This document shows positions 1,313 to 64,000 of a DNA stretch of 64,000 nucleotides, in pieces. Every line of letters starts with the position of its first letter. The first letter of the stretch is position 1. Made by a program: the position numbers and the translations under genes. The stretch comes from Aplysia californica. Its lineage: Eukaryota. The stretch is taken from assembly GCF_000002075.1 (NCBI RefSeq), contig NW_004798045.1:225534-289533 (forward strand), written 5' to 3'. Under the pieces are notes generated by a model. That model saw only the letters and a list, made by a program, of their open reading frames with translations. It did no database searches and was not told the origin of the DNA.

Positions 1313-1332
1313 AAGTCTACATTCCAACTTAC

Positions 1333-2767: not shown

Positions 2768-2803
<36 letters not shown>

Positions 2804-43200: not shown

Positions 43201-46200
43201 GGAAACCTCAACTTCCTTAATTTTAATAATTTGATGCTAAAAAAAAATTAAGGTTTCATCTCCAGCTTTTGACACTCATGCAAAAAATACATTTTTATAG
43301 TACTACTTTTGCTTAACAGACCCAAAACTTACCTTAATTCCTGGGATATTGATGATGTAAATGCCTGCTTTCTCAGACTTCATATCTATCTTCATGTGCC
43401 ACCCATCCACTTCCTCAGTGTGAACCAGAAGACCTCTCAGAATAATGTTGACCCTCACTCTCTCCCCAAGCTGTTAAAATGAAAGTCATCACAAGTCAAC
43501 ATTAATGAGCATGTTTCCTTTTGTTCATCTCTTTATTACGCTTCAACAACTTTTTTCCCGACTCTGTTAATATCTCCAACATTGCATAACACGGGGGGGG
43601 GGGGGGGGGGGGAGGACAGACAGTAGTACATTCAGTTGGTATTATGCCGGACAACTGGGAAGTACTCCTTGGTTGCAAGAGCCCAACAAGAGATAATTTT
43701 GTTTTTGTTTTAACAGTTTTATGGCACTTGCAACACAATAAGGTTATATACATGCTAAAGATTAATGGGGTTACAAGAGAGAAACAAACACAAAAAAAAG
43801 GAGTGATAAGGATGATAGATGTTTGATAGGAAAGAAGGAACAAACCACACCAGAGCACCCACTAATAAGAGAGAGTAGACAAAGAAAAACAAAAGCAAAG
43901 AAAGAGGTAAAAAATAAGACTCACATCCATTAAATCTGTTTCCTGTCATTGCTTTTCGAAACACAATGAATGCTGTATGTGATAAGTATGATTTGTGTCT
44001 ACACAAGTTAAGATAAGACAAAAAAAAAGAAAAGAAAAAGAATAGAAATGATGAACTAACACAGTATCATTTTAAAATTGACAAACGAGCCATACTCCTA
44101 AGAATAACTTTATCGACAAAAAACGGTCAGCTAGTTTGAGAGGTCAACAGTGACTGAAAACGACACATAGAAATACAGACAGAGGACACAGCTTAGGTGT
44201 CTGACACACTGAATGACTGACACTCTCAAATGCCATGAAAGACGATACAGCAAATGACCGTAGTTGTTACATTCTTCGTTTAATCTGGTGGTGTGGTGCT
44301 GGAGACTCCGTTCATCTTTGTGTGCCAGGCTGTGTTAATCAGCGAAGAGTAATTCATTTAGGGCGTCAAGCTCTGTGTTGGCCTCTTTTGTACTTCTATC
44401 CATATATATGATAAATAGTAGTGGTGATAGGCCACAACCTTGTCTTACTCCGTATGTTATTTTGAACCTTTCTGTGAGTCCCTCTGACTTTGTTACTGTA
44501 ATTATGCTGTTCTGGTAAATGGTACAGATGTTATCTAGAAGTTGGCCTCTTACAGTGTAGTTTTCGAGTTCTTTCCACTGCTTGAATGAACAGAGATGCA
44601 ACAACAAGAATATTACTACTCACAGCACATTTATAGGGTTGAATTATTCTGTTATTTCAAGATGCGGCTACACTTTTGCTAACCTTGACTGGTTCCAGCT
44701 GGATTGTGATAGAGTTTGCATCTCTGCTCTTCCAGTTTTCATCAGTGTGAGTTTTTCCGTCCTGGTCGACAAAAGCCCCTGCCATGCCTTTGTACTCCAG
44801 TTGCTTCCCTGAGCCACTATTCGTGGTTGGATATGCATGGACAGTAGATTGAAGCATTAATGCCATTAAAGAGAAACTTGAAACATTAAATGTTGTGGTA
44901 AGAAAATCTACACCGAGACCTCTAGCCATGGACGATAAATGCAATAAGATAAGAGNNNNNNNNNNNNNNNNNNNNNNNNNNNNNNNNNNNNNNNNNNNNN
45001 NNNNNNNNNNNNNNNNNNNNNNNNNNNNNNNNNNNNNNNNNNNNNNNNNNNNNNNNNNNNNNNNNNNNNNNNNNNNNNNNNNNNNNNNNNNNNNNNNNNN
45101 NNNNNNNNNNNNNNNNNNNNNNNNNNNNNNNNNNNNNNNNNNNNNNNNNNNNNNNNNNNNNNNNNNNNNNNNNNNNNNNNNNNNNNNNNNNNNNNNNNNN
45201 NNNNNNNNNNNNNNNNNNNNNNNNNNNNNNNNNNNNNNNNNNNNNNNNNNNNNNNNNNNNNNNNNNNNNNNNNNNNNNNNNNNNNNNNNNNNNNNNNNNN
45301 NNNNNNNNNNNNNNNNNNNNNNNNNNNNNNNNNNNNNNNNNNNNNNNNNNNNNNNNAATTGAGAGAAAGAGATTGAAAGAGAAGGAAAGATGGGCAGAAA
45401 GAGAAGCACAAGCAGCCTGGAAAGAAAATCTAAAAAAGAAGGATGTTGAGAAGGAGATGAAGAGAAAATAAGTGGGGTGCTGTACCATAAGGACAGAGAG
45501 CTCATAAAAATTCAGTGAAAAATAATTATCTGCCATAATGATACACATAGAGGTTACATGCAAGCAGAGGTACCCACATCCCCCATGAAAGAAAAAAACA
45601 TTTATAGGTTCTAAACATTAATTTACAAAAACAAAATCCATGTTCATTTACAAAGTCATTTTCAGCAATGTTTTTCCTCACAGCTCCTAAACTATTAAAA
45701 GCAGGGGAAAAAATACAGATGCTGCTTTTGATTTAATCTTTATCATCCATAACCAACACTGTGTCTCACACTCTTTCATCGTTCACATCACACTCTTCTC
45801 CAACATTCCTCCTGCAAAATGGAAAGGCAAAAATACAACTAAAAAGAAGAGCTCAATTCTGTCTTCAATTCAATTAAAATATGCTGCAATTTTGGTGTTG
45901 TTTTGGTACTTTTTTCTTTCTCAGTTTTTCACAATGAAGGTATTAGAGGCAAAATGTTTGCAGAAACTTACAAAGACATGCGGCAGAAGAAAGTGGCACC
46001 CCGTAGAATGGTAATCCGAGTCTCGTTCCAGTAGATTGGATCCATTGGTTTGAGGAACTGCATACAATGTCCTTTTTTGTAGTAAAAAACGCTGCCTGCT
46101 GTGTTGCGTTTGATCCTGTCATCATCTTTTAACTCACCGTCTCGGATTAGTTGAATCTTGAAGGAAGTGTTTTTCAGATAGCCCGGCTGAAGAGACTTAG

Positions 46201-49200: not shown

Positions 49201-52200
49201 ACAGAACACGACTTCAAATCACCTCCGTGCTCTTCTGTAAGATCGCACAAAAATGAGCAATTGATTCGCTTGTGCTTTTTGCACCCTCTGTGCTTGCTGG
49301 CTAAGGAAATATAGTATGGAAGATGCCAAGTCTTTTCAGCCAGCATTCCTTCTGTTTCAAATTCCCCACATTCTGGGCAAGGCAGGGTCCGCTAGCGGAA
49401 AAAACAACAACCAATAGTTATGATCTGAACGATATTACTATAGTCCCCCCAAAAAAGTGGGTACACATATCCATATCGCCTCTACCATCTTATTTTTTAT
49501 TCCTGCCCACTCGACACCCCTTTCTCCTTTATTTCATTCTATTACAATANNNNNNNNNNNNNNNNNNNNNNNNNNNNNNNNNNNNNNNNNNNNNNNNNNN
49601 NNNNNNNNNNNNNNNNNNNNNNNNNNNNNNNNNNNNNNNNNNNNNNNNNNNNNNNNNNNNNNNNNNNNNNNNNNNNNNNNNNNNNNNNNNNNNNNNNNNN
49701 NNNNNNNNNNNNNNNNNNNNNNNNNNNNNNNNNNNNNNNNNNTTCATAGATAATAATGATCATAATAATTAAAAGAAAGAGAAAGATTTTTGGCACTTAC
49801 AGCAGCATAAATCTTTGTTTTTTGACAAGCGTAGTCAACAACAGCCATGACTTGTTTCAAGCCAGAGAACATCACGTGCCGTACTTCTTGAGTCGCTTTA
49901 TGCCGATCCTCCTCTGTGGAGCGGAACCTTTTGTCCATTCGCAAGTCCACCACTCGAGCAGACAGAAACAGGACAGGGACCCCTGTGAACACGATCAGAC
50001 AAATTATGTCCCTTGAACACAGCTCATGATAAGATAATTATGTCCCTTGAACACAGCTCATGATCAGACAATTATGTCCCTTAAACACAGCTCACGATCA
50101 GACAATTATGTCCCTTGAACATGGCTCACACTTTGACGATTACATCTTTGATCAAAGCTCGCAATTAGACAGTTATGTTACAGAACAGATCACAATTAGA
50201 CAGTCATGTCACAGAACAAAATCAACCATTTGTGGGTCATGAAGACAGTGCATAATCAGAAACTTTGTCTCATGAACATAGCACACATTCAGACATCACT
50301 GATAATATCAGCACCCACTTCTGATTCCGCGTCCTCATTTGTGGGTTTTTTAAATACAGAATTTAACACAATTTTGGAGAGCTGTTAGTGTGACCTCTAA
50401 CATGTTAAGGTTTTAAAATATTTTTTAAACATACAGTAAGTTTCAAAAAAGCAAATATCATTTTTTCTAATATGGGTACTTTGCCTTGAGATACAGCTAT
50501 CTATTTCAAACAGTAATAAGAGTCTGAAAGGGTAAATCTATCATACTCACTGTCCAATCTTCCCCCCACATATCTGTGCAATGATGCCATGATATCCACA
50601 GGGCCCTGTCGCAAGAAAAAGCCTGTCTTCCAGACAAGCAGAGGCTGGAAAATCTTAAGAAGGGTCCTAAAGGAGAACAAGGAATACAATCATAAAACCA
50701 TTCCAATGGGTTTTAGTCTGAGTAATGATAATAATAATAATTGCATTTATACAGCACATATCCATGCTCTAGAGAATGCTCTATGTGCTTTACAACTATT
50801 ATTACCCCAGCAGACCCCCTGAGAGCACTCAGAAACATTCTCGGCTTCCGCGGAAGCATACAGTGCAAGCTGCGGATTTCACGCGCTCAAACACTATCAA
50901 ACTGATAAGATCGTTCACTGTCTATAGCCGAGAACCCATTTCCACCTGGGTGAAGTGAGTAGAGAGAAGTACATTGATATGACAACTAGCATGAAGTACT
51001 GGAAAAGAGGAAGACTGACAGGCAGAAACAAGAGAAGGAAATAAAGAAGTAAGGCATATCAGGAGCATCCTCAAACCATCCACAGCATGAGTTTCCATGT
51101 TAAGACGATTTATAGTTAATAATAATAATAATAATAATAGATAGCATTTGTATAGTGCGAATACATGCTCAACAGCAAGCTCTATGCACTTCACAATCTA
51201 TACTATTACCCCAGATGACCAGAGAGCATTCTGAAACAACCTCAACTTCCTGGGAAGCATACAGTGCAAGCAGCCATTTATTGGCGCTAAACACTAACAT
51301 AGTGCAAAGATCTTCTGCTGTCTTTGGCCAGGTACCCATTCCCACCTGGGGTACTTTACCTTTACAAAGTTTTCAAGGATATATTTCTCTATCAATTTAC
51401 CTGAGCAGCTTGGGATAAAAACTAGGAGGCACTGCTGGCAGGAAGTTGTAACATCTGTTATTTTGGAGCACTTTGCTCTTAGGACGAGGTTCAGGCCACA
51501 TAGATTTCTGGAGGTGAGGTGGAAGGGGGGGGGGGGAGACAAACAAGAATTAGAAATAAACTTTATTTACCACTGAGGAACTAAAATAGTATGTAGAAAC
51601 AGCTGGTAGTGTAGACAGGAAACAATCTACATTTGCCACTTTGTCCCCATCACTTTTGTATACAATACAATAAAACTATTTGCATTCGTCAAACTTTTTA
51701 ATGTCCAACCAGATACAGGACAAGCCATTTCATGTATGGAGTACATGGTGTACCCCCCCCCCCCCTCCCTTCTTCCCCGGGCAAAAGTTAGTGACACATT
51801 TATTGAAAGAAGAGCAAGAAAGTTTGGCATGTTCCTGAACTATGAGTAGCAGATCTTGTATTCAGAACCTTACTCAAATTATGTACACAATCTAGCCAGA
51901 CTGCCATGCACAAAAGCTATTTCAATAAATGGACATTGTTCATTGTTAATTACAAAAATCTGTTTCCAAGCTAAAAAATTTATGTTCTGAAGTTCTCCAA
52001 TTAAAACTCCACAAATAGAAATTTTCTTCAAATTTTATTATGTTGGCAAAACTTCTCAGATGATTGCTTTCATACAGCTGTAAGCAGATTAGAAAATATG
52101 ACTCACTGAACTCTCCTCCTCCTCCTTCTCCCTCCCCTCCTCCTCCTCCTCCTCCTCCTTCTTCTTCTTCCTTCTTCTTCTTCTTCTTCATCCTTTTCTT

Positions 52201-55200
52201 CTCTTTTGATTGTAAAGGTGCCGAGGATTACAAGTACACCCCTTCAGGTGAATGCAATTTATATGCCACAATCTCATTAGTAAAGGAGTGACATTTTTTC
52301 TCCACAGTTACCCTGTCTTCTGCCCAACTCTCTTTCATTTCACCAAGGGTGTGATTGAGAAAAAAAATAAACCAAAGAAAATCCATAATGTGGAGTCCGC
52401 CTTTCAGATGTTCAATTCATTAAAACAACAATAACTGAAAGTCTTCTTCTGCACTCATTGTCTAGGTCTCACGCATAGGTAAGTTTAGGTATCCAAAACT
52501 TATATAAGTTAATATGATTTCCAAGTTCAGAGACGTGCCCATTTATCCTTCCAATCAATAGGCTCCCTTATATTTGACACTCAGGCAGTCACATTGATCT
52601 TTAGGAGGGAAGTCTTTATCTTTCTTTTTTTTTTAACAAATCAGAAAGTTTCAGTTTTTGAATAGGAATTAATAACAATATAGACTTTTACTGATATTGC
52701 TCACCCGAGTGGGCTAGTTTCTTTTTCAAATTTCAGTTTCCAAGATATTTTTCACATACCATACATTCACACAGCCGATCTCCTTACTCAAGAAGAATAA
52801 GTGCTAGATTTTTACCTATACTAAGACCAAATATATGAAAAATTGGACAAAACAAAACGAAAAAAAAAAAATGCATCACAATATCTACCGACACTGCATA
52901 CATAAATCCAGGGTCCAATCAAGAGCTTTAGCACCAGGCCTACGAGCCTCTTGCAAAACTTATTTTAACAAATCAAAAAGTAGTTTAGCCCTTCTTACCA
53001 GAATTTCATGATAATCTGGAACATCTTCCATGCGCACATATATGTATTTCTCTTTGTCCACACGAGCCCCAAGTGTTTTGGTTGGCACTGGCAGAAGGAG
53101 ACCTTGGCGCTTGAGCAGTCCCAGAACATGAGCAGCCTGCAAGAGAAGATAACTGGTATAAGCCAGATAGCTCAAATACTTGCACGTTCAGAGAGGTAAG
53201 TGATATATACCCTAGCATATGATCAGGATAAGGTGCACCATACGATGTATTCATGTTACTCAATATAAAAATCTAGACAATATCTTTGCAAAAACGAATG
53301 CCCATTAGGTACATATCAAGATCTTACAGAGGAAGTTAGAGTGTTTTGTTGTTGTTGCTGTTGTTTTGTTGTTGTTGCTGTTGTTTTGTAATTTTGTAGG
53401 AGGGGGGGTCTGAGCGCTGTGAAGTATAGGACTCCTTTATAAGATACACTCGTGGAAAGGTGTTGGGGGGGGGGGGGGGGGTGAAGGGAAGGGGTTTTGC
53501 AAAGAAATATTACAGTATGACGAAAGTCTTGGCCACAATGTTATTTTGAGTTTTGACGTACTTCAACACAACAATATGAGTTTTGACGTATTTCAACGCA
53601 ACAATATGTTATTTTGAGTTTTGACGTATTTTAACATAACATTATGTTATTTTGAGTTTTGACGTATTTCAACACAACAATATGTTATTTTGAGTTTTGA
53701 CGTACTTCAACACAACAATATGTTATTTTGAGTTTTGACATACTTCAACACAACAATATGACTCAAAAAAGACAATCTCACATCTCCTGGTGCCTTTTGT
53801 CCAGCCAGGACTTTTCCTGCAGAACTGGCTGTCCAGAATGGAACTTCTTTACCAAGAAAGCCTAGGTAGATTCTCTCAGGGGGAGTCTCGGTGATCAGTT
53901 TTGAGCAGATCTCTTCATAGGCACGCATGTTGGTAGCACACAGGCTCACTTTTAGATTTGGAGTATATAAACATTCACCCTGTGAAAAGATATTAGGAGA
54001 AAATTTCAGCATTGAGTGTATGAAAAAATTTTGATTAACTTATACGAGACAAAGCATGGCAAGCAAATGGGTATGCAGTCAAAGCCTTAGCCAAAGTGCT
54101 ACAGAAACGCTCTACACCGTCTATACTGAAAAAAAAAAGCATGCACTCAATAAAAATAGCTTTGAGAACCAGTAACCCTACTAGGCTGATACTAATGGGC
54201 TTATTAAAAGACCCACTATATTTAAACCTTGTGGATGGTGCAAGCAAATATGGGTCAATTTTTAGGGTCAATTGCAACTCAGAAGAATTTTCGCTGGAAA
54301 AGGAAATTTCAGATTCTGATTGGAACACATACAGAGCTATATGATTAGATAACTTCTCCACCCGGAGTGCTATGGCAAAGAGCCTAAACATGACACCACA
54401 GGTATTGATAGGTTTTGATGAACTGAAAAACCATTCAACTACAAATAACTTGTACTACAAATTGATCTCAAGTGATTTTTGCTCAGATTATAGCTTGTTC
54501 ACTTTCCTCTGACCACTGTTCAAATAAGATAAAATAAAATCGCTCTGTTTAATCTTTCCAGATCTTTGCATATGGTTCTAAAAGTTGAATGACTAACAGA
54601 ATTTAAAAGCTCATTCCTAGAGATCACTGCAAACTAAGATTCCGACACATTTTCTTTAAAGTAAGCCTAAAGTGGGTAAAAAAATAATTGGGGATTCACA
54701 GCATACACCTAAAACATTTAAAAGTTGACATATTTTCCTCAACACCACACTTTGACATTTGCCTAAGGAAGGAGATTCAAGAAACGGGGTGACTAATTTC
54801 CGAGACTAATGGGGAGCACAAGGATATGTCCAGACAGTCAGGGGATAAAATCTACAAGCTTATACTGAAATATGGGGGCAGGGTGGTGTCGCTGTCTCAA
54901 AATGAACAATTTGTACGCAAGGTTACTGTAAGTCATTTATTACAGTGATGCTGTGTATGCATCCAAAGAGCGGGTTTTAATATAGGGCACAAAGAGAAAC
55001 ACTTTTTCATTACTGGATCAAGATTTTAAAAAAAAAATTTGTTTCGTTGCTGGCCTGCAGAAGTGCCATGCCAAATTTCGTCAGCGTAGGTGAATTAATA
55101 AATGAAATTGAACTTTTTGTTTAATGCTGTCAGACGAAAATGATCAAACTATAGCAGTGGGTATTACACAGAAAATCACGCAGCAACAAATTCCTTAAAG

Positions 55201-58200
55201 AAAAAAAAGAAAGTCCCTCAAGCTGTGATCTAAGTATCTTACCCAGTTTTGTAAGAGATTGAGAACTTTTCCAAGGCGAGCGAATGAGAAGCGTTTGTGG
55301 GATTTTTCTCTTGCTTCCTTGTCTGTAGTATGGAACAGTTCCTTTTGAGAGGAGGCACCAAATCTTGGAAGCTGTGGAAATAATGATAAAGATAAAGCAA
55401 TCCACTTTGTCTAGGATAGATCCACATATTGACTTGTTTTGCCTTAGACCCTGACATTTCTTGAAAAATTTTTTTTTTTATCATGCAAATCTCCTTTTAC
55501 AAAAGAATGTACAGATAAGATTGATTTAACTCTTTATCTCCAGCAAACTGCTCCCAGCTTAAGAACCCCCCCCCCCCTCCACCCACTCTAATATTAATGA
55601 GTCGAAAATCAACAAAAAAAAATATTTTTGATCCAACCCATCATTTCAGCTGCTCTCTACTGAGCATGACAACATACGTCTCATTTGAAATGTTAATTTC
55701 TAATTCTGAGTAGTTGACTACAATTCATTAACACATTATATGTATTAACCCTTCCAGCTGTCAATTATTTCTGAACTCCACTTGCCTTGACTGGAGGATT
55801 ATTTTAGCCTACACTGCACTGACACAAGGTTATGTCAGAATAACATTCAGAAAAAATGTCACTCTGAAGCTAGAAACTTGTATCATATGTCACAACAACC
55901 ACAAATGAATGAAGAATTTTAACAAAATAGATATAAGATTTGGAAATATATTTTCTACTCACATTTATTGTTGTGTTTGTTTGCTTCGTCTGTGTGCTTT
56001 TGTAACTGTGTTCAGTAAGTTTGTAAACATGTTTTGTGTGATTATCCGCGAAACATTCAGGATGTGTGTGCATAGTTCACAACTGGAACATTTATTTCAC
56101 CCTCTGTATCATTGATGCCATCCTCATACGTAGACTGTCAAGAAGATTGCATATGTTTTGATTTGATTGGGTTCTCATAACAAAGTTAGATCTAGTCAGA
56201 GCTGGTATTTCATTCGCGCGCTAAAAGGAAGAGTCTGGTTTTTCATTCCTTTTGTGAGAGTGTAACAATCATGTAAAAGATTATTGCTACATGTGAGGTA
56301 TCAGCACACTGACAAATTTCAGTCCTAATCAACTCAAAAACATGAACGCTGCACTGGACAGAATTGGAATATGGGGTGGTGGCTTCACTTGACGCTGAAT
56401 TTTCAGCTACATTTCACAGCAAGTTTAAGTGATAAAGGCTATATTTTATAATAAACCTGCTACAATAACAGCAACACTAGAATGGTAGGAGCTTACCATA
56501 CTATAGCACCCATCAGCCACAAACTGATCTGCATTACCCACTTCATCTATTGGGTGGTTGAAGGGCAACCTGGTACATTCTACTTTCATTCTTTCACTCT
56601 TTTGTTTCTGTTGGCCTATCTCACTCCTCCCCATCCTCAAATGCCCATACTTAAACAATGTGCATCTCTTTACTCAAACAAACAAACTCACCTTGTCAGC
56701 AATATGCAGCACAGTCTTTTCCCATTCACAGTGCAGCCAAGGGACCCTCTGAGCCACCAGAGAAACACATTTATTCAGCGTGGACACCACCTCCTTCTGA
56801 AAGTTCTGCTTTGTCTGGAGTACATAAAATTCACATTTTACCAACACATATTGTGACCAGTGAATAAAGATGAAAATTAAACAATGCTCAGAAATAATTC
56901 TTAAAAAGTCATTACACTTAAAAGTTAACTTAGGAAAATGAGAGTTATAAAATGAGGGAAGAAATGGAATTACCACTGTCATGTTGATCAGTAAACTGGA
57001 CTGTCCATTTTGGTCATACAGATTTGCCAAGATATCCAAAACGCCAATACCCCATTCCATACCCTGTTGTCCTTTGAAGTCAAGACACTCCAGATGCCAA
57101 GTCCTCCTGGGAAGTAAAGGTCACTTGCTTTATGATCATGAACATATTCATACACACAGCAACATAGTCACAGATATACAATATAAAATGTGAATGGACG
57201 TGGTGGAATTAGGCGCTCATCAAAATAATGAAATTGAAGAAACAGGCAATTTTTCTTGAATTTTTTTTTCCGGCTTAACACCATTGTTGTCCAATTAAAA
57301 ACAAAATTCTGGGTATATTTTACTAAAAAAACGTTGATTAAAGGCACAAAAGATGTAAGTTTTTCAGTTTCCACAGACTATCAAGCTATGTAAATAACCA
57401 GACTTTGGCGGTCATTTTCTCACTAATTCTACATTTGAAACTATGCGACCCCTCCTTCTTCAATTTCAAATATCTTGACTTCTATTCAACATAGACGGGC
57501 ATTTTTTCCCCCGATAGCAAGAAAAGTGAATAAGCTTTAAGATTATACAAATAACTCAACATGCCAAAAAATTAAGGAGCGCCTGATTCCATCACGTCGT
57601 GACACATATAGTCACACAAAGCTAGCAAAAAATTCAAACACTTTCAAGAACACATATCTTGTGGTCACATACTCTATACGAGAGGAGCCATTTTTATAAT
57701 GGTTTGAGAGATGCCATCTGATGTGACATGTTGTAACATTGACAGTTTTTATTCCCTCTCCAAACTGAAATTCTTTAATAAAAGTGATGTACAATTTAAG
57801 TTCCATGCATATTCGCATGTGTTTTAACCCTTCCTCTTATGCCACAAAAATTTTACACAGCGACAATAGATATATACTATCTTATGTTTTATCTTATTTC
57901 ATCTTATCTTATCTTATTTTACCTTACCTTATCTAAAATGCAGTAAAAAATAGACCTATAATATAACTATTGACTTGGACCACATGACCCTCTCACTAGT
58001 TGCCACGAGTGTGAACAAATCCCATGAGAACACTTTCACACCACACCCCCTTGACAAATATTAGCATCAGAACATCTATAGAACAAAAAATTGGTAATTC
58101 AACTTGTCAACGGGCTTGAGGGCGCAGGCCTGGAACAAGAAGAATAACATAATTATTTGCAAATATTAACATCCTTTCCAAAAGATCCACTTACTCGGTT

Positions 58201-61200
58201 ACTCCAAAAGTTGCAGTAGTCAGAGCTTTGACTAGAAACTCAATCTTTCCCTTCACGAGCTGCAACATTTGAGAGTCTCCACCACTTTGAGAAATTTCCA
58301 CCAACAAAATCACCACATCTGGACACTAGTATACAGAAGAGAGATTAACATAAGACAAAAATCTAAACAAAACTCATTTATTTTACGATACTAATATCAC
58401 CATTCCAAACTGATGACATGAGCAAAGCTAATAATTCTTGTGATAAGAGAGATAAACAGGCAACAACAGCTTCAAGACAAAAGATGAAATAATAAAGTCC
58501 TTGAATAATGATGGATCAAATAGGTTGGAAATACAGTGTGATTCAAAAGTTGCCACAAGATGTGCTAAGATCATTCATTCAGTTCTTTTGAAATGAGAAC
58601 TTAATTCAGAGGTCCCGTGCAAGTTTTGAGAAGGGCACAGATCTAAAAGCTGGCTGAAAAATCATAAATGACATAAATGAACAATATAGATAAACAGCAT
58701 TTTGCTGAAAAGAAATAACTTTGCTATTGTGATTATGAAAAAAAAAGGAACTGTTTCTATGCTTGATGTTCTATTTTTATTAAAATGTTATTGACAGAAA
58801 CCATTTGCCATTTCATAGATTCACAAACCGCTGATTCACAGTTTTTCTCTGAAAAGAATTCTTAAATTATAGGTCATGAAAGCTTCCTGTCCACAATAGA
58901 ATTACCTTCACTTTTGAAAGTAGACGAAGAGTAAGTTTGAGTAAATTTAGAAAATCTCAGCCAAATGTAAAGAAACACTGTTCAATTCAAATAGCGAAGG
59001 AAAACTTTTCAACTAAATATTGCTGCAAGAGAGTCAACGGGTCATACAGCCTGGTATAAAAAAAACCCAGCTACGAATATAAAAATCATCTGCGCTGTCA
59101 GACGAAAACCCGACAGTTTGCTACCACGAGGCCAAAGTAAGGGAATGAAGACAAACAAGAAATGCTATACCTTATTAATAACCACACCCACAGCTTCAGT
59201 TAGCTTTTGTGCATAAGAGTCCATCTCTGATTCCTCTGTGATTGTAGGATAAGCTATCATCACAATGCATCCTTCTGAAATAAGGCTGTCTTGAAGAGGC
59301 TGGTGAAATGAAAGGGAAAAGATGAGACTACTTTCTTCTACTCTGTAAGAAAGTTGGATCATAAAAATGTAAATGGCTATGAGACAAAACTCTTTGTATC
59401 AAAAGAGTGAAAAAAGAAGAGAACACTGATTATTTGGTTCCTAGTCTGTATTCTGTGGAAGCAAAAACAGAATCAAAGCTGAACAAAATAATTGACTACA
59501 GTAAGTTTTGATACCAAATATTTATGTGGCATCGCAGTGAAACCAGGCGCTCATCAGAATAAAGAGACCGAAGAGCCCAACAGGCTCTGCCCTTTGGATT
59601 ATTCTTATCTTTTTTTTTTAGCTCCACACATTTGATGTCCATTTAAAAACATAATTCTGTGTGAATTTTACTGAACAGCGTTGAAAAAGGATAATTGTAA
59701 CTTGCAGAATAATCCTTTTTTTTTCAAAAACCAGTATCAAAGACGGACCTAATTTCAAAACATAAAATGTCTCACACTATTAATCTGGGTCTCCAGAATG
59801 TTGAAGAAATTCAAGGCACCATCAGGGTCATCTGATTTCACTTCCCATGATTCACGATATGCAAACACAGAATTGCCTCCCACAGCTGTGCTTCCACAAA
59901 GAAGGGGGATAACACCTTCTTGAAACTTTTGATCTCGAAGTATCACCAACTTCTGTTTCTGTGGTGTGAAATAATTATCAGGATCACCACCTAGAAAGAA
60001 AAACAAAACAATAAAAAAGTGATTAATTGTTGAAAAAAGAGCAAGTAAATATACACCTTAAAAGGAACCAAGAAATATTTACAAGAAAACTTTTTTTTTA
60101 CAAGCTAAGTCACCACCATTTATGGGGTAGTGAATAAACTCCCCGCCATCACTGAAGATGTTTGTTTAGTTCCTCAATGGGGAAGCTTTTTATCAAGTAT
60201 TTTCCTTTGTCTGCTATGATGCTGTATCCTGCTCAGCCCAGGCTGGCCCTCGATAGGCAGGGTCAAAGTAGCCCGCTACATTGTGTTCAAGATCCTCACT
60301 TAGATGCTAACCTCTTGCTTCACTATGTTGGTCAGCGCTCATATGACCTTAGCAGTTGCGAGCGCCGTAAAACCTTATACTATACATACTATACTATGTT
60401 GGTCAACTTGATTAGGAATGCATTACAACAGTAAGTCCTGCAAATTCTGTATTAGAAAAAAATTCAAAACAAAGATTTTGTATTGGACAGATTATAACAT
60501 AACATGACAGACTTCTGTTCAAGTTTATCACCCTGGTAGACACAGAATAGGCAATTTTGAAGACAAGGCGCTTTCAGCTTACAAACATCCCAACTCTGGC
60601 ACTATATAGTAATCCCAAGAAGGCCAGCCAATGTACATGGTCTTTAATTCAACCAACATGCAGTGTTCTTTCTCTACTAGCCAGGCAGGTGCCACAGAAA
60701 ATGAAGTCGAATGACCACATAATGCCATTGTGTGGAAAACATTTTACGGAAGGCTTTTTTTTTGGGTAAGGTTTTATGGCGCTCACATTTGAATAAGGTC
60801 ATATGAGCGCCAAAGTGTTGATGTCAACAGAAAAGTCCAAACGGGGAATCAGATTTATTGCATTCACCTCTGTAACCTCAACAGCACAAAGTCTGCTTCT
60901 ACTATCAAGACACCCCGGAAATAGTGGGTCACAAGAGTGTGACAAACATACAAAAGAAGTAGAGGACAAATGACGATAGTAAGAATGAAGAAAGAAAAAG
61001 CAGCAGTTCCCCCTATGTTGTTCCAGGACAGTGTGGGCATGACATTGATAAATCAGCCCATTTACAATTCTACTGTGCATAATAACATGTCAATATCCCC
61101 CCTTTGGGAATGGCCTAAATACACTTCAGTTAGTAGCACTGTCCTGAGGGGGAGGGGGGGAGGGGGGTAATGGAAAGCTTACCCATACCTGACACAATTA

Positions 61201-63849
61201 GTACAAAGTATCAATGATGTCTGAGGGGGGCGGAGGGGAGGATTAACTTTTTTTTAGAGGTAAGGTTATTCCTCTCATACTAAGAACCTGGCTGGATTTC
61301 AAGTTCAATCAACCAATTTCGACAAAAGAGAAAAAAATGTTCTTCATTAAAAAATGTATTAATTCAAGTACAACAGTTTTGTAATCATCGTAGACAAGAT
61401 AATAAACATTATAATTCTTGCCCCTCTTTCAAATGTACACTACACAAGACAGATGCCATAAAGAAACGTATATTGTTAGCTGTAAATTAAGCGTTATGTT
61501 TCTGCACTCTTTGTTTAGGTCTCATGCTTTCATGCTATATATATTTGAAATGAAGGTGAGACATTATCCAAGTACTTTTCCAGTAAGAAGCCTATCGTTC
61601 AGCATAAGTTTTTTCAGATTCGCAAATCTATTGACCGAAGTAGAGTGTCCTTCGATCAACAGACTGAACAGCACATCTGAGAGCATGTGGCTTGGCTAGT
61701 GTTTGGAGAAGTACAGAACATCCTCAAAGTTTTTATCATAATATCATCCACATACTAATCTTCAAGCTCCCTGATGATCGCAAGTTATTTTTGAATGTTC
61801 ACAACTCCATAACCTGTATGTAACTCTGAGAATAAATAGTTGAAATTACACAACGCAAGTAGGGTAAAGCAACAAAAACAAATATGTGAGGCAGCGTGGT
61901 GGAATGAGGCTCTCGTCAAAATAATCAAAGTGAAGAAACTTGCATTTTTCCTCAGGTTTGTGAATTTTTATAAAATTTTCGTTTTTTGGCTGAACACCTT
62001 TCATGCCCATTAAAGAACTCATTTCTGTGTGGATTTTTCTGAAAAACGTTGATTAAATTCACAAAAAATGTTAATTTTCAGTTACCACGGACTCTTAATC
62101 TAAGGAAATAACTATTTTTTGGTGGCCATTTTCTCACTAATTTTTCCTCTAAAAACAGGTGACCCCCAGCTCCTTTATTTGCTAATATCTTGACTTGTAT
62201 TCGAGATAAATGGGTATTTTTTTCATCCAAATAAAGACAAGTGAACAAGCTTCAAAATGATACCTATAACTTTACATGTCCAAAAATTGACGAGAGCCTG
62301 ATTCCACCACGCTGCCTCACATATAGTTAACAGGAAGAAAAAGTAAATTAATGAAAAAGGTAAAACAAGTTTCCAATGCCACTAAAATTAAAGGATGTAG
62401 CATATCTCTGCACTTAAGTTGCATGCTGTTCCAGCTTGAAATAAATAGATGCAAAAGAAAATAATGTTCTACTATTTTAAAGATATTTCAATGAACAGGC
62501 TATATTATTTTCAGAGTAAACATTCCTTCAATGTGTACCACAAAAATGTCTTACATAAGTGCAGTAACAGTCTAGTGCCAATTATTTTTTTTATATAACT
62601 AAAGGGTTCCCTTACAAAACATACTATGTGGCAGCGTTTAAAAAACACATAGGCACATTGATTTTCGCCCACTTCAGAGTTCAGAACCCATTTTGCACTG
62701 AAATTTCAAATCTGCAAAGACAGTGTTGAAGACTACAAAGCATTTCATTTTCAAAAAATCAAGATAGACCACTTTAACATTTTGCAGTCACTTGGCGCAA
62801 TAACGTGCCAGTGAAAATTATCCGTTCTGGTCACCTAGCGCAGTTCTGTGCCAGGTTCGAGAAGTCCGTTGCAGTCGCTCTCCTGGCTGGGTGACCATGG
62901 GGTATTTTGTACTGTTGGCTGTGTGACTGCAAAGTGTTAAGGCAGCACCAGGACGAATAAAAAGATGCTGGCCACTAATTTTGTTTGGAAGTCGGACACA
63001 CCATGTTTTGTTCCATTTTAGAACCCTAAGAGTCTCCTTATTTTCAAGACTTGCAACCCTTCAATCAACCAATTTCGACAAAAGAGAAAAAAATGTTCTT
63101 CATTAAAAAATGTATTAATTCAAGTACAACAGTTTTGTAATCATCGTAGACAAGATAATAAACATTATAATTCTTGCCCCTTTTTCAAATGTACACTACA
63201 CAAGACAGATGCCATAAAGAAACGTATATTGTTAGCTGTAAATTAAGCGTTATGTTTCTGCACTCTTTGTTTAGGTCTCATGCTTTCATGCTATATATAT
63301 TTGAAATGAAGGTGAGACATTATCCAAGTACTTTTCCAGTAAGAAGCCTATCGTTCAGCATAAGTTTTTTCAGATTCGCAAATCTATTGACCGAAGTAGA
63401 GTGTCCTTCGATCAACATAAAGACTACAAAGCATTTCATTTTCAAAAAATCAAGATAGACCACTTTAACACTTTGCAGTCACTTGGCGCAATAACGTGCC
63501 AGTGAAAATTATCCGTTCTGGTCACCTAGCGCAGTTCTGTGCCCGGTTCGAGAAATCCGTTGCAGTCGCTCTCCTGGCTGGGTGACCATGGGGTATTTTG
63601 TACTGCTGGCTGTGTGACTGCAAAGTGTTAAGGCAGCACCAGGACGAATAAAAAGATGCTGGCCACTAATTTTGTTTGGAAGTCGGACACACCATGTTTT
63701 GTTCCATTTTAGAACCCTAAGAGTCTCCTTATTTTCAAGACTTGCAACCCTTCAATATTTACCGTGGAAAGTTGTCATGTATGTTTTGCCCTGAGAGATC
63801 ATCGGACAACCAGCCCATTGAATTGCTCCTCTGGGTACCGCACAGTCCA
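1333..63849 (-). CDS. Partial multi-exon gene (52 exons, ~2196 aa in window, both ends outside): Roco-family protein, pseudoRoc-COR / Cys finger / MBT-like / LRR-EF hand-LRR / Roc / COR / TIR / TIR
   Basis: All 52 exons have AG/GT boundaries and matching intron phases, giving one open frame. Roc G1-G5, COR, LRR, EF-hand and TIR box-1 motifs are directly visible. Exons hidden in N gaps cannot be excluded. Confidence 0.9.
2454..2629 (-). CDS. Exon w51: VFINM...PPCFISYCWQNS, TIR1 end / TIR2 box 1
   Basis: CFISYxW motif; phase 0-2. Confidence 0.9.
2737..2825. repeat. (TG)n microsatellite running into N gap
   Basis: visible. Confidence 0.9.
3315..3543 (-). CDS. Exon w50: WMP...AKIFLVFMSNNFVLDEACCNLFKYA...LLADE, TIR1
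   Basis: TIR beta-C/alpha-C pattern; phase 2-0. Confidence 0.9.
4368..4894 (-). mobile_element. SINE family A, full length
   Basis: B box ggttcgaatcc on minus strand; TSD TAGCAACTGT (4358-4367 / 4895-4904). Confidence 0.88.
4897..5080 (+). mobile_element. SINE family C
   Basis: degenerate A/B boxes, body shared with 36755-36945. Confidence 0.6.
5143..5245 (-). CDS. Exon w49: DVFVSYCAKD...KIGYR, TIR1 box 1
   Basis: DVFVSY motif; tttcag / gtgaga, phase 1-2. Confidence 0.9.
5550..5790. repeat. Unclassified dispersed repeat, second copy at ~18270-18500
   Basis: shared ttactctttatctcc...cactaaattggtca...taatgaatgaa. Confidence 0.65.
6523..6615 (-). CDS. Exon w48: IMPPDSNQDFDLHL...EDVAA
   Basis: ttacag / gtcagt, phase 1-1. 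Confidence 0.85.
7873..7990 (-). CDS. Exon w47: GVKEPHMF...QCLKNFHTISIRNLH
   Basis: phase 0-1; C...H completes COR Zn motif. Confidence 0.9.
8012..8345 (-). mobile_element. SINE family B
   Basis: reverse complement of 29649-30006 type with (TTA)n tail. Confidence 0.85.
8863..9080. repeat. ~24-bp minisatellite (ccactgttcaagggttgaatatta)
   Basis: roughly 8-9 degenerate units. Confidence 0.85.
9160..9307 (-). CDS. Exon w46: GSELTVKAHG...FFMPCPDCMRL, COR-B
   Basis: phase 2-0; PCPxC motif. Confidence 0.92.
9965..10059 (-). CDS. Exon w45: VRLHQFCDSSLIWKRGSYL...HQS, COR-B
   Basis: ctacag / gtgtgc, phase 0-2; WKxG motif. Confidence 0.9.
10489..10587 (-). CDS. Exon w44: FEWPEMD...YKFDYLPAGLFNRGQ, COR-B
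   Basis: YxFxYLPxGLF motif. Confidence 0.93.
10780..11274 (+). mobile_element. RTE-type LINE 3' fragment
   Basis: EMRCLR...TRRDKIRN...KWYGHLLR, stops/frameshift, (AGTAA)n tail. Confidence 0.8.
11331..11495 (-). CDS. Exon w43: EGRLNHSD...LVPCLLLEKQPE, COR-A
   Basis: phase 0-0; LVPxLL motif. Confidence 0.92.
11636..11709. mobile_element. Tiny TTAA-flanked MITE (piggyBac-like ends)
   Basis: TTAA-cccattcact ... agtgaagggg-TTAA. Confidence 0.55.
11919..12065 (-). CDS. Exon w42: VAQAVQFLHELGSLQHF...VINPQWIVD, COR-A
   Basis: FLHxxG and PQW motifs. Confidence 0.95.
12140..12460. repeat. CA-rich compound repeat with internal duplication
   Basis: visible. Confidence 0.85.
12836..12914 (-). CDS. 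Exon w41: IQNRSVILYKELE...FDSTE, COR-A
   Basis: ttcag / gtacgt, phase 2-0. Confidence 0.88.
13666..13712 (+). pseudogene. U2 snRNA 5' fragment (degenerate)
   Basis: aacacttcttggccgttagggtaaaatcaaagtgttgtagtctgttc versus U2 5' end ATCGCTTCTCGGCCTTTTGGCTAAGATCAAAGTGTAGTATCTGTTC (recalled). Confidence 0.55.
14543..15056 (-). mobile_element. SINE family A, full length
   Basis: TSD TCTTACTGAAG (14532-14542 / 15057-15067). Confidence 0.88.
15199..15305 (-). CDS. Exon w40: GIEKLQEQL...MGEKIPGVWLNFEE, Roc end / COR start
   Basis: phase 0-2; IPxxW motif. Confidence 0.92.
15721..16270 (-). mobile_element. RTE-type LINE 3' fragment
   Basis: QLRFFGHIKR...GKIEEKNSRGRERTTY; (GAA)n tail. Confidence 0.8.
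16447..16536 (-). CDS. Exon w39: VSKVELPMKELQAKY...FVSAHTGQ, Roc G5
   Basis: ttgcag / gtgggt, 90 nt; VSAxTG motif. Confidence 0.9.
17339..17485 (-). CDS. Exon w38: FFLSDRAVYFLTW...APIFVIGTHLDQ, Roc G4
   Basis: GTHLD motif; phase 0-0. Confidence 0.95.
17620..17830 (-). mobile_element. SINE family C
   Basis: similar to 36755-36945. Confidence 0.6.
18018..18118 (-). CDS. Exon w37: IDICPW...VWDFAGQTVYYNTHQ, Roc G3
   Basis: WDFAGQxxYYxTHQ motif; phase 1-0. Confidence 0.95.
18617..18684 (-). CDS. Exon w36: SLVKALLSG...EITDG, Roc switch I
   Basis: ttgcag / gtgggt, phase 2-1. Confidence 0.9.
19208..19645. mobile_element. TA-flanked MITE family M1
   Basis: TIRs and body match 61885-62321. Confidence 0.85.
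19766..19937. mobile_element. Tc1/mariner-type MITE
   Basis: TA-CAGTATAACACGGATAG ... CTATCCGTGTTATACTG-TA. Confidence 0.85.
20315..20480 (-). CDS. Exon w35: last LRR, PPKEI linker and Roc P-loop KLMLVGLGGAGKT
   Basis: Roco signature; aag / gtgtgt, phase 1-2. Confidence 0.95.
20639..20715. repeat. (CTT)n microsatellite
   Basis: visible. Confidence 0.95.
20870..21290 (+). mobile_element. Highly decayed LINE RT fragment (RTE-like)
   Basis: remnants resembling GVKQGC..P..F and FGLxIN..KTE with many stops. Confidence 0.4.
21315..21682. mobile_element. MITE family M1 (diverged)
   Basis: atgtgaggcagcatggtgaaatc ... gattccaccgcgttgtga. Confidence 0.8.
21705..21899 (-). CDS. Exon w34: LRRs (FPEVVFELKNLTYLSL...LQNLQLGNNPNL)
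   Basis: LRR consensus; ttgcag / gtaagt, phase 1-1. Confidence 0.92.
22964..23931. mobile_element. TTAA-flanked DNA element spanning an N gap
   Basis: perfect 13-bp TIR CTCATTCGCTACG, TTAA on both sides. Confidence 0.75.
24359..24491 (-). CDS. Exon w33: EF-hand (IFRLFDEDTNGTLDPKEI)
   Basis: canonical 12-residue DxDxNGxLxxxE loop; tttcag / gttggc, phase 0-1. Confidence 0.9.
25124..25216 (-). CDS. Exon w32: VKSNVLLSKANFEDDF...ERHNQ, insert in LRR
   Basis: cgtgtag / gtaggt, 93 nt, phase 0-0. Confidence 0.85.
25230..25490. repeat. 28-30-bp minisatellite (aggaatatcagtggaaaacttgaaatattt)
   Basis: roughly 9 units. Confidence 0.9.
26110..26387. mobile_element. TTAA-flanked MITE family M2
   Basis: TTAA-ctcttt ... 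aaagag-TTAA; inverted copy at 36323-36618. Confidence 0.85.
26398..26606 (-). CDS. Exon w31: LRRs (FPPVVFKL...LEVLSLNGNCFTELP...GVMWAK)
   Basis: LRR consensus; ccttag / gtaagg, phase 1-0. Confidence 0.92.
26922..27527. mobile_element. TTAA-flanked MITE carrying a nested RTE fragment
   Basis: TTAA-ccccttcactg ... cagtgaagagg-TTAA. Confidence 0.65.
27015..27386 (+). mobile_element. RTE-type LINE 3' fragment
   Basis: RKIQYYGHLKRH; (CCAGGTA) tail; TSD ATAGTATCTTT (27004-27014 / 27387-27397). Confidence 0.8.
27549..27900 (+). mobile_element. SINE family B, full length
   Basis: A box tggcctagtgg, B box ggttcgaatcc, CORE-like middle, (TTA)n. Confidence 0.9.
28810..28995 (-). CDS. Exon w30: LRRs (LKDLGLSNNLLEKLP...LKRLDIEHNDFS)
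   Basis: LxxLxLxxNxL repeats; cag / gtaatg, phase 1-1. Confidence 0.92.
29110..29375. mobile_element. MITE family M1, inverted and partial
   Basis: ttgacgagcacctgtttccac...ccacatat end. Confidence 0.65.
29649..30006 (+). mobile_element. SINE family B, full length
   Basis: A/B boxes, CORE-like middle, (TTA)n. Confidence 0.9.
30063..30291 (-). CDS. Exon w29: KWQDL...GLKPTKL...MMCETH...SLNLSSNQLTEIP, end of module 1 plus first LRR
   Basis: tctttcag / gtgagg, 229 nt, phase 0-1; LxLxxNxL. Confidence 0.88.
30347..30500. repeat. ~40-bp tandem repeat, about 4 copies
   Basis: caatgctattacaaagttaacatcagtaatcact. Confidence 0.9.
30922..31029 (-). CDS. Exon w28: VESGLMKIIQQF...DTIAK
   Basis: aattccag / gtatct, 108 nt, phase 0-0. 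Confidence 0.8.
31542..32318. mobile_element. piggyBac-like non-autonomous element
   Basis: ccctttgaaccct ... agggctcaaaggg-TTAA. Confidence 0.55.
32835..33265. repeat. Two adjacent copies of a dispersed repeat; third at 43700-43865
   Basis: shared gatagatgtttgatag...aaaccacaccagagc. Confidence 0.65.
33301..33369 (-). CDS. Exon w27: EPLPEMKALTQGIAGADKMSVQE
   Basis: tgtgacag / gtgagt, 69 nt, phase 0-0. Confidence 0.8.
33983..34164 (-). CDS. Exon w26: DVSLVMSS...HSLHMLDNEGFEF...LLRFQH
   Basis: ctcctcag / gttggt, 182 nt, phase 1-0. Confidence 0.75.
34785..34880. repeat. (ATG/ATA)n microsatellite, likely an expanded SINE tail
   Basis: visible. Confidence 0.85.
36323..36618. mobile_element. 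TTAA-flanked MITE family M2
   Basis: TIR ctctttaaaccc/gggtttaaagag. Confidence 0.85.
36755..36945 (+). mobile_element. SINE family C
   Basis: degenerate tRNA head, shared body. Confidence 0.6.
36987..37097 (-). CDS. Exon w25: LPLLVLPES...RSFKLHPLCYFR
   Basis: tctcccag / gtgaga, 111 nt; only phase 1 is open. Confidence 0.82.
39062..39139 (-). CDS. Exon w24: VLYARQVQLRDK...KWNFS
   Basis: catttcag / gtgagc, 78 nt, phase 1-1. Confidence 0.8.
39273..39515. mobile_element. MITE with ~28-bp TIR
   Basis: tgccgtaagctgacaaaacgcctttttt ... aaaaaaggcgtttcgtaagcttacggca. Confidence 0.8.
39746..39857 (-). CDS. Exon w23: FQVPCGYQAL...PVHFPS
   Basis: tctgcctag / gtaaag, 112 nt, phase 0-1. Confidence 0.8.
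40738..40787 (-). CDS. Exon w22: GKDQGQKTPVPLWSFFK
   Basis: tgtaccag / gtaagt, 50 nt, phase 1-0. Confidence 0.75.
41186..41290 (-). CDS. Exon w21: DVDGEERHFIYSSDQLMPDG...AELS, MBT-like repeat C-half
   Basis: gccccag / gtgaga, 105 nt, phase 1-1. Confidence 0.82.
41770..41930. repeat. CA/GCAC microsatellite
   Basis: visible. Confidence 0.9.
42594..42717 (-). CDS. Exon w20: SSWSLGHSDFEPGRTLEV...GNLVL, MBT-like repeat N-half
   Basis: tactccag / gtgagc, 124 nt, phase 0-1. Confidence 0.82.
43333..43470 (-). CDS. Exon w19: LGERVRVNIILRG...NIPGIK
   Basis: ttttaacag / gtaagt, 138 nt, phase 0-0. Confidence 0.82.
44335..44585 (-). mobile_element. LINE reverse transcriptase fragment (RTE-like)
   Basis: GVRQGCGLSPLLFIIYMD...LLFAD*. 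Confidence 0.85.
44684..44816 (-). CDS. Exon w18: GSGKQLEYKGMAG...QLEPVK
   Basis: gaatag (weak acceptor) / gttagc, 133 nt, phase 2-0; N gap upstream. Confidence 0.62.
45770..45811 (-). CDS. Exon w17: RNVGEECDVNDER
   Basis: attttgcag / gtgaga, 42 nt, phase 2-2. Confidence 0.6.
47103..47116 (-). CDS. Exon w16: 14-nt microexon (RTDL-R)
   Basis: ttattctttttag|AGAACAGATCTAAG|gtaaac; converts phase 0 to the phase 2 needed downstream. Confidence 0.6.
47235..47313 (-). CDS. Exon w15: CFYCGSLLDTPCLHCLMCLECCCQFA, Cys-rich finger
   Basis: acttgcag / gtaaaa, 79 nt, phase 2-0. Confidence 0.75.
47783..47891 (-). CDS. Exon w14: GPIIPYHNYSY...MDPAE
   Basis: ctcttcag / gtagta, 109 nt, phase 1-2. Confidence 0.72.
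48291..48919. mobile_element. Kolobok-like non-autonomous element
   Basis: TTAA-GGCCACAC ... GTGTGGCC-TTAA. Confidence 0.7.
49223..49391 (-). CDS. Exon w13: RTLPCPECG...GCKKHKRINCSFL...EEHG, Zn motif ending first COR
   Basis: ttccgctag / gtgatt, 169 nt, phase 0-1; PCPEC. Confidence 0.82.
49801..49982 (-). CDS. Exon w12: VPVLFLSAR...KTKIYAA, first COR-B
   Basis: ttcacag / gtaagt, 182 nt, phase 1-0. Confidence 0.85.
49985..50260. repeat. ~34-bp minisatellite (cccttgaacacagctcatgatcagacaattatgt), decaying distally
   Basis: about 4 clean units plus degenerate ones. Confidence 0.9.
50551..50666 (-). CDS. Exon w11: TLLKIFQPLLVWKTGFFLRQG...GRLD, first COR-B
   Basis: ctcctttag / gtgagt, 116 nt, phase 2-1; WKxG motif. 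Confidence 0.85.
50725..50960 (-). mobile_element. SINE family B, 3' part
   Basis: body and (TTA)n tail. Confidence 0.8.
51118..51350 (-). mobile_element. SINE family B, 3' part
   Basis: body and (TTA)n tail. Confidence 0.8.
51401..51507 (-). CDS. Exon w10: KSMWPEPRP...CYNFLPAVPPSFYPKLL, first COR-B
   Basis: cctccag / gtaaat, 107 nt, phase 0-2; WPE...YxF...P motif. Confidence 0.85.
52999..53136 (-). CDS. Exon w9: AAHVLGLLKRQGLLLPVP...YHEIL, first COR-A
   Basis: cttgcag / gtaaga, 138 nt, phase 0-0. Confidence 0.85.
53534..53760. repeat. 38-bp minisatellite, about 6 copies
   Basis: caacacaacaatatgttattttgagttttgacgtactt. Confidence 0.9.
53782..53979 (-). CDS. Exon w8: GECLYTPNLK...QKAPGD, first COR-A
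   Basis: ttttcacag / gtgaga, 198 nt, phase 0-0. Confidence 0.85.
54100..54700 (-). mobile_element. Decayed L1/Tx1-like RT fragment
   Basis: remnants resembling ISLDxxKAFxxVxH, LFAIAL, FKYxG across frameshifts. Confidence 0.35.
55243..55371 (-). CDS. Exon w7: LPRFGASSQKELF...LGKVLNLLQNW, first COR-A
   Basis: ttccacag / gtaaga, 129 nt, phase 0-0. Confidence 0.82.
56692..56814 (-). CDS. Exon w6: TKQNFQKE...AQRVPWLHCEWEK...ADK, start of first COR
   Basis: actccag / gtgagt, 123 nt, phase 0-0. Confidence 0.85.
56974..57106 (-). CDS. Exon w5: RTWHLECLDFKGQQGMEWG...INMTV
   Basis: cttcccag / gtaatt, 133 nt, phase 2-0. Confidence 0.82.
57188..57608. mobile_element. MITE family M1
   Basis: TIRs and body match 61885-62321. 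Confidence 0.82.
58195..58325 (-). CDS. Exon w4: CPDVVILLVEISQ...TFGVT, pseudo-Roc G4 region
   Basis: atactag / gtaagt, 131 nt, phase 0-2. Confidence 0.85.
59171..59299 (-). CDS. Exon w3: PLQDSLISEGCIVMIAYP...GVVINK, pseudo-Roc
   Basis: caccag / gtatag, 129 nt, phase 0-0. Confidence 0.85.
59776..59990 (-). CDS. Exon w2: GGDPDNYFTPQKQKLVILRDQ...SWEVKSDD...ETQINS, pseudo-Roc G1-G3 region
   Basis: tttctag / gtgaga, 215 nt, phase 1-0. Confidence 0.85.
61304..63755. repeat. Local near-identical duplication X-Z-Y-X'-Y'
   Basis: 61304-61661 = 63060-63417; 62729-63065 = 63419-63755. Confidence 0.9.
61885..62321. mobile_element. MITE family M1, best-preserved copy
   Basis: TA-TGTGAGGCAGCGTGGTGGAAT...ATTCCACCACGCTGCCTCACA-TA, near-perfect ~35-bp TIR. 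Confidence 0.92.
63763..63849 (-). CDS. Exon w1 (phase 1-1): DCAVPRGAIQWAGCPMISQGKTYMTTFH, linker before pseudo-Roc
   Basis: ttttcag acceptor, gtaaat donor; phase 1 joins next exon. Confidence 0.7.
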
Positions 63850-64000
63850 CTGAAAAATGGCAAGAGACAAATTGGATTGATCAAACAACCATACAGTGAC
63901 CCAGGAAGAAAAGAAAATCTTTTTACACTGACACAGTATGTCCGTTTATCTGTGTGTTTATCCTCGTGTCTGTGAATACACAACCTTGTTTCATTATGCG

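Follow-up and report, generated by a model that had tools for sequence, protein, structure and literature searches.

Does a Roco gene of Aplysia californica encode two Roc-COR units in one chain, the first of them with a dead GTPase? The question arises from a stretch of 64,000 nucleotides of contig NW_004798045.1 (hereafter the window; coordinates count from its first letter). Its minus strand carries a canonical unit of leucine-rich repeats (LRR), Roc, COR and TIR domains and, N-terminal to it, a series of exons that the original prediction read as a GTPase-dead Roc-COR module of about 620 residues. We refer to the N-terminal exons w2-w12 as module 1 and to the canonical Roc-COR (20.5-7.8 kb, exons numbered with an r) as module 2. 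All sequence strings quoted for that prediction are present at their places on the minus strand. Our analysis supports it in part: ahead of the canonical Roc-COR lies a second Roco-derived element, expressed and constrained, of which only the COR-B-like third has demonstrable homology to Roco sequence. The gene is on the minus strand, spans the whole window and starts upstream of it with an FBXL-type LRR; on balance we favor the view that the interval encodes the N-terminal half of a gene that is very long and weakly expressed. Its domain order would be an FBXL-type cysteine LRR, about 340 residues without a recognizable family (w2-w8) and a COR-B-like domain of about 190 residues (w9-w12), past which the transcript most probably extends to the LRR-EF-Roc-COR-TIR unit that lies downstream in the window.

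The module 1 exons are transcribed, spliced, in frame and single-copy. RNA-derived contigs (runs X4, X5 and X6 of a single study), mapped over one 6-kb stretch (49.1-55.0 kb), join six exons by GT-AG introns into one open frame between 53979 and 49223, all on the minus strand: w7 (53782-53979), w8 (52999-53136), w9 (51401-51507), w10 (50551-50666), w11 (49801-49982) and w12 (49223-49391), with boundaries refined after a ±1 ambiguity. Runs X4 and X6 each hold all six exons in a single contig (3,406 and 5,599 nt), and X5 yields shorter pieces. The assembly has a run of N at 49550-49742, inside the w11/w12 intron. Contigs of all three runs contain the junction 49801 to 49391, which jumps this run with a continuous frame, so the gap is intronic and no coding sequence is lost. 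Expression is low, with a contig depth of 9-17. The share of 31-mers found in the RNA runs is 0.10-0.11, against about 0.10 predicted from nine exons within 50.4-60.1 kb.

Further upstream, a protein model in the databases (P0001, UniParc UPI00065B96B7, 344 residues), found with exon w2 as the query at 99% identity in a search of 1.84 billion proteins, splices w1-w4 just as had been proposed. It contains w2 (59776-59990), a conserved coding exon of unassigned fold that had been read as spanning the P-loop to switch II, and w3 (59171-59299), which matches no family. It also supplies the acceptor of w4 (58233-58325); the w4 donor at 58233 is predicted, in phase 0, and P0001 reads through it to a stop at 58194. 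The next two exons are predicted only, by a model of splice sites and coding potential: w5 (56692-56814, phase 0/0) with a strong donor of 8.2 bits, and w6 (55243-55371, phase 0) with an alternative acceptor at 55341. Over its 11 exons module 1 shows no stops and no frameshifts, and it measures about 530 residues rather than 620. Exons w2 and w10 each occur once in the genome (927,310,431 bases in 4,332 contigs), so the lack of introns in the RNA contigs does not come from DNA of a retrocopy.

The resemblance to Roco proteins lies in the last four exons. We built per-exon profiles from three copies, namely module 2 and its close paralogues C105 and C323, which have the same exon structure. When the module 1 exons are scored against these paralogue profiles (an 11 x 11 matrix), the two best cells are the expected COR-B pairs: w10 with r9 at 9.6 bits, which exceeds all 1,561 decoys, and w12 with r10 at 4.9 bits. 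A colinear chain statistic, devised in this analysis with exon pieces separated by X spacers, includes the segments w9 with r8 and w11 with r10. It yields z values of 5.1-7.4 for COR-B, a score reached by none of 500 shuffles, and of 5.9-10.5 relative to decoys cut from real proteins (0 of 924). On the COR-B profile, w9-w12 score 64.3. The range for 46 genuine COR-B domains of MFHAS1 type is 35-59, and 18 genuine but distant ones have a median of 59.5; w9-w12 are thus as close to COR-B as are the genuine COR-B domains of other Roco families. The domain begins in w9 with a W-P-E ... Y-N-F-L-P-A motif, has its core in w10 (L-V-W-K-T-G), continues through w11 and ends in w12 with C-P-E-C, 28 residues and a further Cys. 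None of the 87 other Rocos retrieved has the C-P-x-C motif, which occurs in module 2 and in C105 and takes the form C-L-E-C in C323. Exon w12 keeps it, and the 28-residue spacing to the next Cys is the same in both modules. By these comparisons, w9-w12 are shown to be homologous to the COR-B of their own LRR-Roc-COR-TIR subfamily, including its private C-x-x-C ... C motif.

The Roc and COR-A parts fare differently. Module 1 had been said to align in order with the protein's own Roc-COR; this holds beyond chance for w9-w12, whereas the Roc and COR-A portions score the same as shuffled sequence. Pfam, run on each stop-free segment of the module 1 exons and on P0001 and its homologues P0002 and P0005, gives no relevant match. 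The Roc models PF08477 and PF00071 do not recognize w2-w12, the COR-A model PF16095 is likewise silent, and a genome-wide search with the Pfam COR-A and COR-B models returns about eight Roco loci, none of them in module 1. Exon-by-exon profile searches for Roc and COR-A also find no match. A custom hidden Markov model (HMM) of 84 Roco proteins recovers 9 of the 11 module 2 exons tested (not r2 or r11) in colinear order at 2-37 bits, the main Roc and COR-A exons at 13-37 bits; module 1 exons score like shuffles and plus-strand decoys. BLASTP of module 1 exons against module 2 exons reaches E 0.016 at best, in a tiny database, and when hhalign compares the Roco alignment with each module 1 exon and with the w2 alignment, E is ≥ 0.002 and probability ≤ 14% throughout. 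Neither a phmmer search of the PDB sequences with w9 and w10 nor one with a three-species w2 profile returns a Roco or GTPase match, and a search of the ESM Atlas produces no usable match.

The matrix and chain statistics agree. All expected Roc and COR-A pairs in the paralogue-profile matrix are at noise, and by domain the colinear chain has z values of 0.2-0.9 for Roc and -0.5 to -0.7 for COR-A. With single sequences, the chain of module 1 against module 2 is unconvincing (z 1.3-2.5). For the whole module the profile chain reaches z 2.0-4.3, and it does so while pairing w7 with a Roc exon instead of COR-A. Module 1 scores 32 and 29 on the Roc and COR-A profiles, where the weakest genuine domains, bacterial ones included, score 75 and 46. 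Judged by these statistics, the GTPase-dead Roc domain of the original prediction is without support, and the supposed Roc part appears no more GTPase-like than shuffled sequence.

Two readings of w2-w8 follow different kinds of evidence. The exons may be Roc and COR-A diverged beyond recognition, which is favored by their length of 341 residues and their position between LRR and COR-B; or they may be unrelated sequence, which is favored by all the sequence statistics. The first of these would make w2-w12 a complete second Roc-COR whose G domain has lost G1, G3 and G4 and which acts in cis as a pseudo-GTPase partner or brake of the active one. We regard this as a tentative proposal, less probable than not, though it is the strongest of the alternatives. 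The layout fits, since an LRR is followed by a segment of the size that Roc and COR-A need (about 320-340 residues) and then by the COR-B-like domain, and we know of no COR-B that occurs without Roc and COR-A. Colinear motifs can be picked out by eye: K-x-K-h-h-I-L-R-D at the place of the strand-1 K-L-h-h-h-G-x, a W-x-V-x-x-D-D, and R-V-P-W-L against K-I-P-x-x-W-L. The matrix cell of w2 with r3 (2.3 bits) is near the 99th percentile, and in hhalign the first 40 residues of w2 fall on the columns expected for strand 1 and the P-loop, at E 0.11. An AlphaFold2 model of P0001, built from an alignment of only three sequences, alternates low-confidence strands and helices as an α/β fold would (mean predicted local distance difference test score, pLDDT, of 40, too low for the model to be usable). 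Pseudo-GTPase domains that sequence searches missed and structures revealed do exist, such as pG1 and pG2 of p190RhoGAP and CENP-M. They would be functional analogues if w2-w5 form a G fold without nucleotide motifs; the difference is that the sole model here, at pLDDT 40, offers no evidence of a G fold. Against a complete second Roc-COR stand the noise-level results of every statistical test of the Roc and COR-A part, the shortfall against even the weakest genuine domains and the misplaced pairing of w7. Moreover, hhalign gives a second, equally weak P-loop placement that differs from the one first proposed, and two different placements are a sign of pattern-seeking.

Whatever its fold, w2 is conserved. 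Orthologous exons lie on short contigs of two other species, with 47% (P0002) and 40% (P0005) identity. The proportion of synonymous differences (pS) is 0.81-0.84, so that synonymous sites are saturated, compared with a nonsynonymous proportion (pN) of 0.37. The three species agree in the codon and phase of acceptor and donor and share 22 invariant residues. The comparison shows w2 to be under purifying selection. Searches with the C-terminal half of P0001 and with exon w12 find no further homologues.

Exon w1 (63761-63850), which had been included in the Roc-COR module, belongs elsewhere. The first 156 residues of P0001 map upstream of the window (extended coordinates 68919-64773), and residues 48-144 match FBXL2 (PDB 6o60_C, E 1.5e-7) and, more weakly, FBXL17. 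From these PDB matches and from reading P0001, 26-residue repeats of the FBXL-type cysteine LRR pattern are recognized at the N-terminus, w1 included. P0001 maps to w1 at 100% identity, and by reading the sequence its pattern x-I-Q-W-x-G-C-P-x-I-S-Q fits the repeat L-x-x-L-x-L-x-G-C-x-x-I-T-D. The exon thus reads as the fourth and last cysteine-type repeat of an FBXL-like domain, outside any G domain. The string AGCPMISQGKT is indeed present in w1; it combines the G-C-x-x-I-[ST] signature of the repeat with a chance G-K-T at a spacing unlike that of Walker A, and is therefore not a P-loop. The likeness to FBXL2 and FBXL17 consists in the cysteine-type LRR of P0001 that w1 continues; in contrast to those proteins, no F-box is detected in the N-terminus of the Aplysia gene, and Pfam finds no match in P0001. 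The domain also differs from canonical Rocos, in which LRRs of typical or bacterial type directly precede Roc.

Are modules 1 and 2 parts of the same protein? The matched pieces of the RNA contigs stop exactly at the w12 donor (49223), with 3,667 nt (in the 5,599-nt contig), 1,437 nt and 492 nt of contig beyond it; the transcript thus continues downstream. An ab initio, phase-aware chain leads from w12 through about 1.2 kb of spliced sequence to the LRR exon at 30291-30063, which it enters in the LRR frame, though the model is weak and the path holds dubious exons. When conserved exons were sought from 49 to 30 kb with the paralogues as a guide, interspersed repeats swamped the result. Independent evidence for continuity comes from the C323 paralogue. 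On its contig, an exon homologous to the FBXL-LRR exon (31121-31324; 38% identity, E 3e-11) precedes Roc by about 46 kb on the same strand, Pfam MBT repeats (56102-58357) lie between them, and the LRR-Roc-COR-TIR unit begins at 77296, the whole layout occupying one strand over about 60 kb. Pfam finds no MBT match in the window. A published RefSeq model places Mbt, LRR, ROC, COR and TIR together in a single Aplysia protein (PMC9334734); C323 is probably the gene concerned, LOC101848126. We consider it probable that modules 1 and 2 belong to one long protein.

The competing view holds that there are two genes. The upstream one, with the FBXL-LRR, the w2-w8 region, the COR-B-like domain and further exons, would end before about 30.3 kb, and the LRR-Roc-COR-TIR gene would start at an ATG in 30291-30063. 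No read or contig joins w12 to the LRR exons, within a mapping limited to 49.1-55.0 kb. As annotated, P0001 is a short model of its own, Met codons occur in frame ahead of the LRR in the 30.3-kb exon, and the 3,667 nt past w12 could represent further exons and a long 3' untranslated region. The used w12 donor with 3.7 kb of contig after it speaks for continuation, as does, weakly, the open, phase-consistent path into the LRR exon. The single-strand arrangement of C323 and the RefSeq model of its probable product point the same way. We therefore hold two genes to be rather unlikely.

The extra COR-B-like domain may serve as a built-in pairing surface, because in solved Roco structures two chains pair through COR-B (PMC6337361). 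Its partner could be the canonical COR-B of the same chain, in which case the resulting pseudo-dimer would act in cis to gate the active Roc, or it could be a paralogue's COR-B. In the most elaborate form of this proposal, a giant immune-type Roco chain would place a complete but nucleotide-dead LRR-Roc-COR ahead of an active LRR-Roc-COR-TIR, with the two COR-Bs paired in cis as an asymmetric 'dimer'; a pseudo-GTPase would there control a GTPase that ordinarily depends on dimerization. We consider that arrangement doubtful, at a level between the complete second Roc-COR and the two genes.

Several observations weigh against a second, COR-B-bearing Roco element in one long chain. The Pfam COR-B model (PF25497) does not match w9-w12 even at E ≤ 10, so that of the profile searches for this domain only those with the subfamily profile respond (z 5-10). 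The homology rests on that three-sequence profile and on our own chain statistic, and the domain split was picked after the exon matrix had been viewed. Compared with module 2, three introns lie within 1-2 codons, one has the same phase and two are unshared; as evidence of duplication this is mixed, and we do not count it as support. No orthologue of the COR-B-like exons was found, so constraint is demonstrated for w2 only, and raw polyA reads of run X11 have zero depth on exons w7-w12. No junction between w12 and the 30.3-kb LRR exon was seen within the mapped stretch, the ab initio path is weak, and the pairing mechanism is pure inference.

Two other explanations have little to recommend them. 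That all resemblance between the modules, COR-B included, is chance picked by eye would agree with the BLASTP and single-sequence chain results, the silent Pfam COR-B model and the empty PDB searches with single exons; it is very improbable given the paralogue-profile scores that no shuffle or real decoy reaches, a COR-B score above that of genuine domains of another Roco family and a subfamily-private motif at identical spacing. Equally improbable is a decaying duplicate, left without function after an ancient internal duplication yet still spliced into the transcript, for which one could cite the extreme divergence from Roc and COR-A, the low expression without X11 reads and a non-significant frameshifted relic near C105 (described below), since 11 exons and some 530 codons show neither stop nor frameshift, pN of w2 is well below pS, and its splice sites and 22 residues are kept in three species.

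Module 2, by comparison, is by sequence a canonical Roco unit, with Roc, COR-A and COR-B in order after the LRR and intact G motifs. All of its features lie on the minus strand. The LRR exons (21637-30318) match Pfam LRR_4 and LRR_8 individually and are common to the paralogues; an EF-hand-like exon (24572-24330) has a Pfam EF-hand match. The Roc domain (16393-20559) is recognized by Pfam, includes an extra exon, r4b, found via the paralogues, and retains G1 (G-L-G-G-A-G-K-T), G3 (D-F-A-G-Q), G4 (T-H-L-D) and G5 (S-A). COR-A (15413-11328) matches at E 3e-10 and 9e-11, and COR-B, which Pfam also recognizes, comprises the predicted exons 10587-10489, 10059-9965, 9307-9160 and 7990-7873; splice sites of the COR-A and COR-B block (7790-15413) are kept in the three paralogues. 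The TIR exons at the 3' end (1282-3641) match Pfam TIR_2 and are kept in C105 and C323. The 3' end (5953-1282) seems to contain two TIR units, one with the C-terminal half of TIR_2 at 3641-3288 and another with a new F-I-S-Y-C-W box at 2698-2435.

C105 and C323 share the exon structure of module 2 at 50-77% identity per exon, and no module-1-like exons were found upstream of either. On contig C105 a frameshifted w2-like relic lies on the minus strand at about 1,297,400-1,297,500, some 13 kb upstream of the C105 Roc; its two parts (D-P-D-N-K-F ... V-A-I-L and, in another frame, V-C-G-S-T-L-V-G) have a non-significant E of about 0.6-0.7. The COR-B of all three paralogues (9307-7873 in module 2) carries C-x-x-C, 28 residues and C-x4-H, which could be a zinc site. 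Contig C1199 contains an intron-less open reading frame of 350 residues with COR-A and COR-B, in which C-x-H-C takes the place of the subfamily's C-P-x-C. The Aplysia MFHAS1 homologue (P0010, 1,205 residues; contig C328, 102825-106289) encodes LRR-Roc-COR in one intron-less frame of 735 codons.

Repeats occupy parts of the module 1 introns. The w1/w2 intron contains, at 61300-63750, repeated blocks with pseudo-copies of the upstream LRR exon (61683-61597 and 63418-63353; 95-97% identical to P0001 residues 65-93) and an open segment of 80 codons in two copies (63751-63512 and 63060-62821), reflecting a local tandem duplication or an assembly artefact. In the w9/w10 intron, an interspersed repeat at 50676-51463 reaches a summed RNA contig depth in the tens to hundreds of thousands, attracts many raw polyA reads (95-99% identity) and looks like a highly expressed repeat family. 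Beyond w12, a reverse-transcriptase-like open segment on the minus strand at 44338-44619 (Y-G-V-R-Q-G-C ... F-I-I-Y-M-D) is probably an intronic fragment of a long interspersed nuclear element.

Set beside the known Roco proteins (MFHAS1/MASL1, LRRK1/2, DAPK1 and the Chlorobium tepidum Roco), module 2 is a textbook member. Those proteins have one Roc-COR per chain, unlike this gene, in which an extra COR-B-like domain sits far toward the N-terminus after sequence that the Roc and COR-A models do not recognize. In the reviews and surveys of Rocos consulted we found no description of a member with a second COR or Roc-COR unit; neither a review of the family (PMC6337361) nor a survey of brown algae (PMC11378527) mentions one. 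Two Aplysia ROCO-TIR genes have been described as 'TLR-like', LOC101848126 (Mbt-LRR-ROC-COR-TIR) and LOC101845043 (EF-hand-LRR-ROC-COR-TIR) (Kron 2022, PMC9334734). They belong to the same species and to the same small family, with LRR, an EF-hand-like exon, Roc, COR and TIR. That study, which assigned domains with InterProScan, reports no second COR or pseudo-Roc, in contrast to the gene described here.

The gene is a member of a mollusc-specific ROCO-TIR family, for which a role as innate immune receptors or adaptors has been proposed (PMC9334734). COR-mediated pairing of two chains is believed to underlie the action of Roco GTPases, including LRRK2, and the control that pairing exerts on the GTPase is debated (PMC6337361). 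As the sequence evidence stands, the most striking part of the claim, the dead GTPase, is unproven. Were w2-w8 truly a dead Roc and COR-A, this would be the first Roco known to us that combines a pseudo-GTPase and a GTPase in cis. In itself, a chain with a spare COR-B-like domain would offer a natural system in which to ask whether COR-B alone suffices for pairing and for the regulation of Roc.

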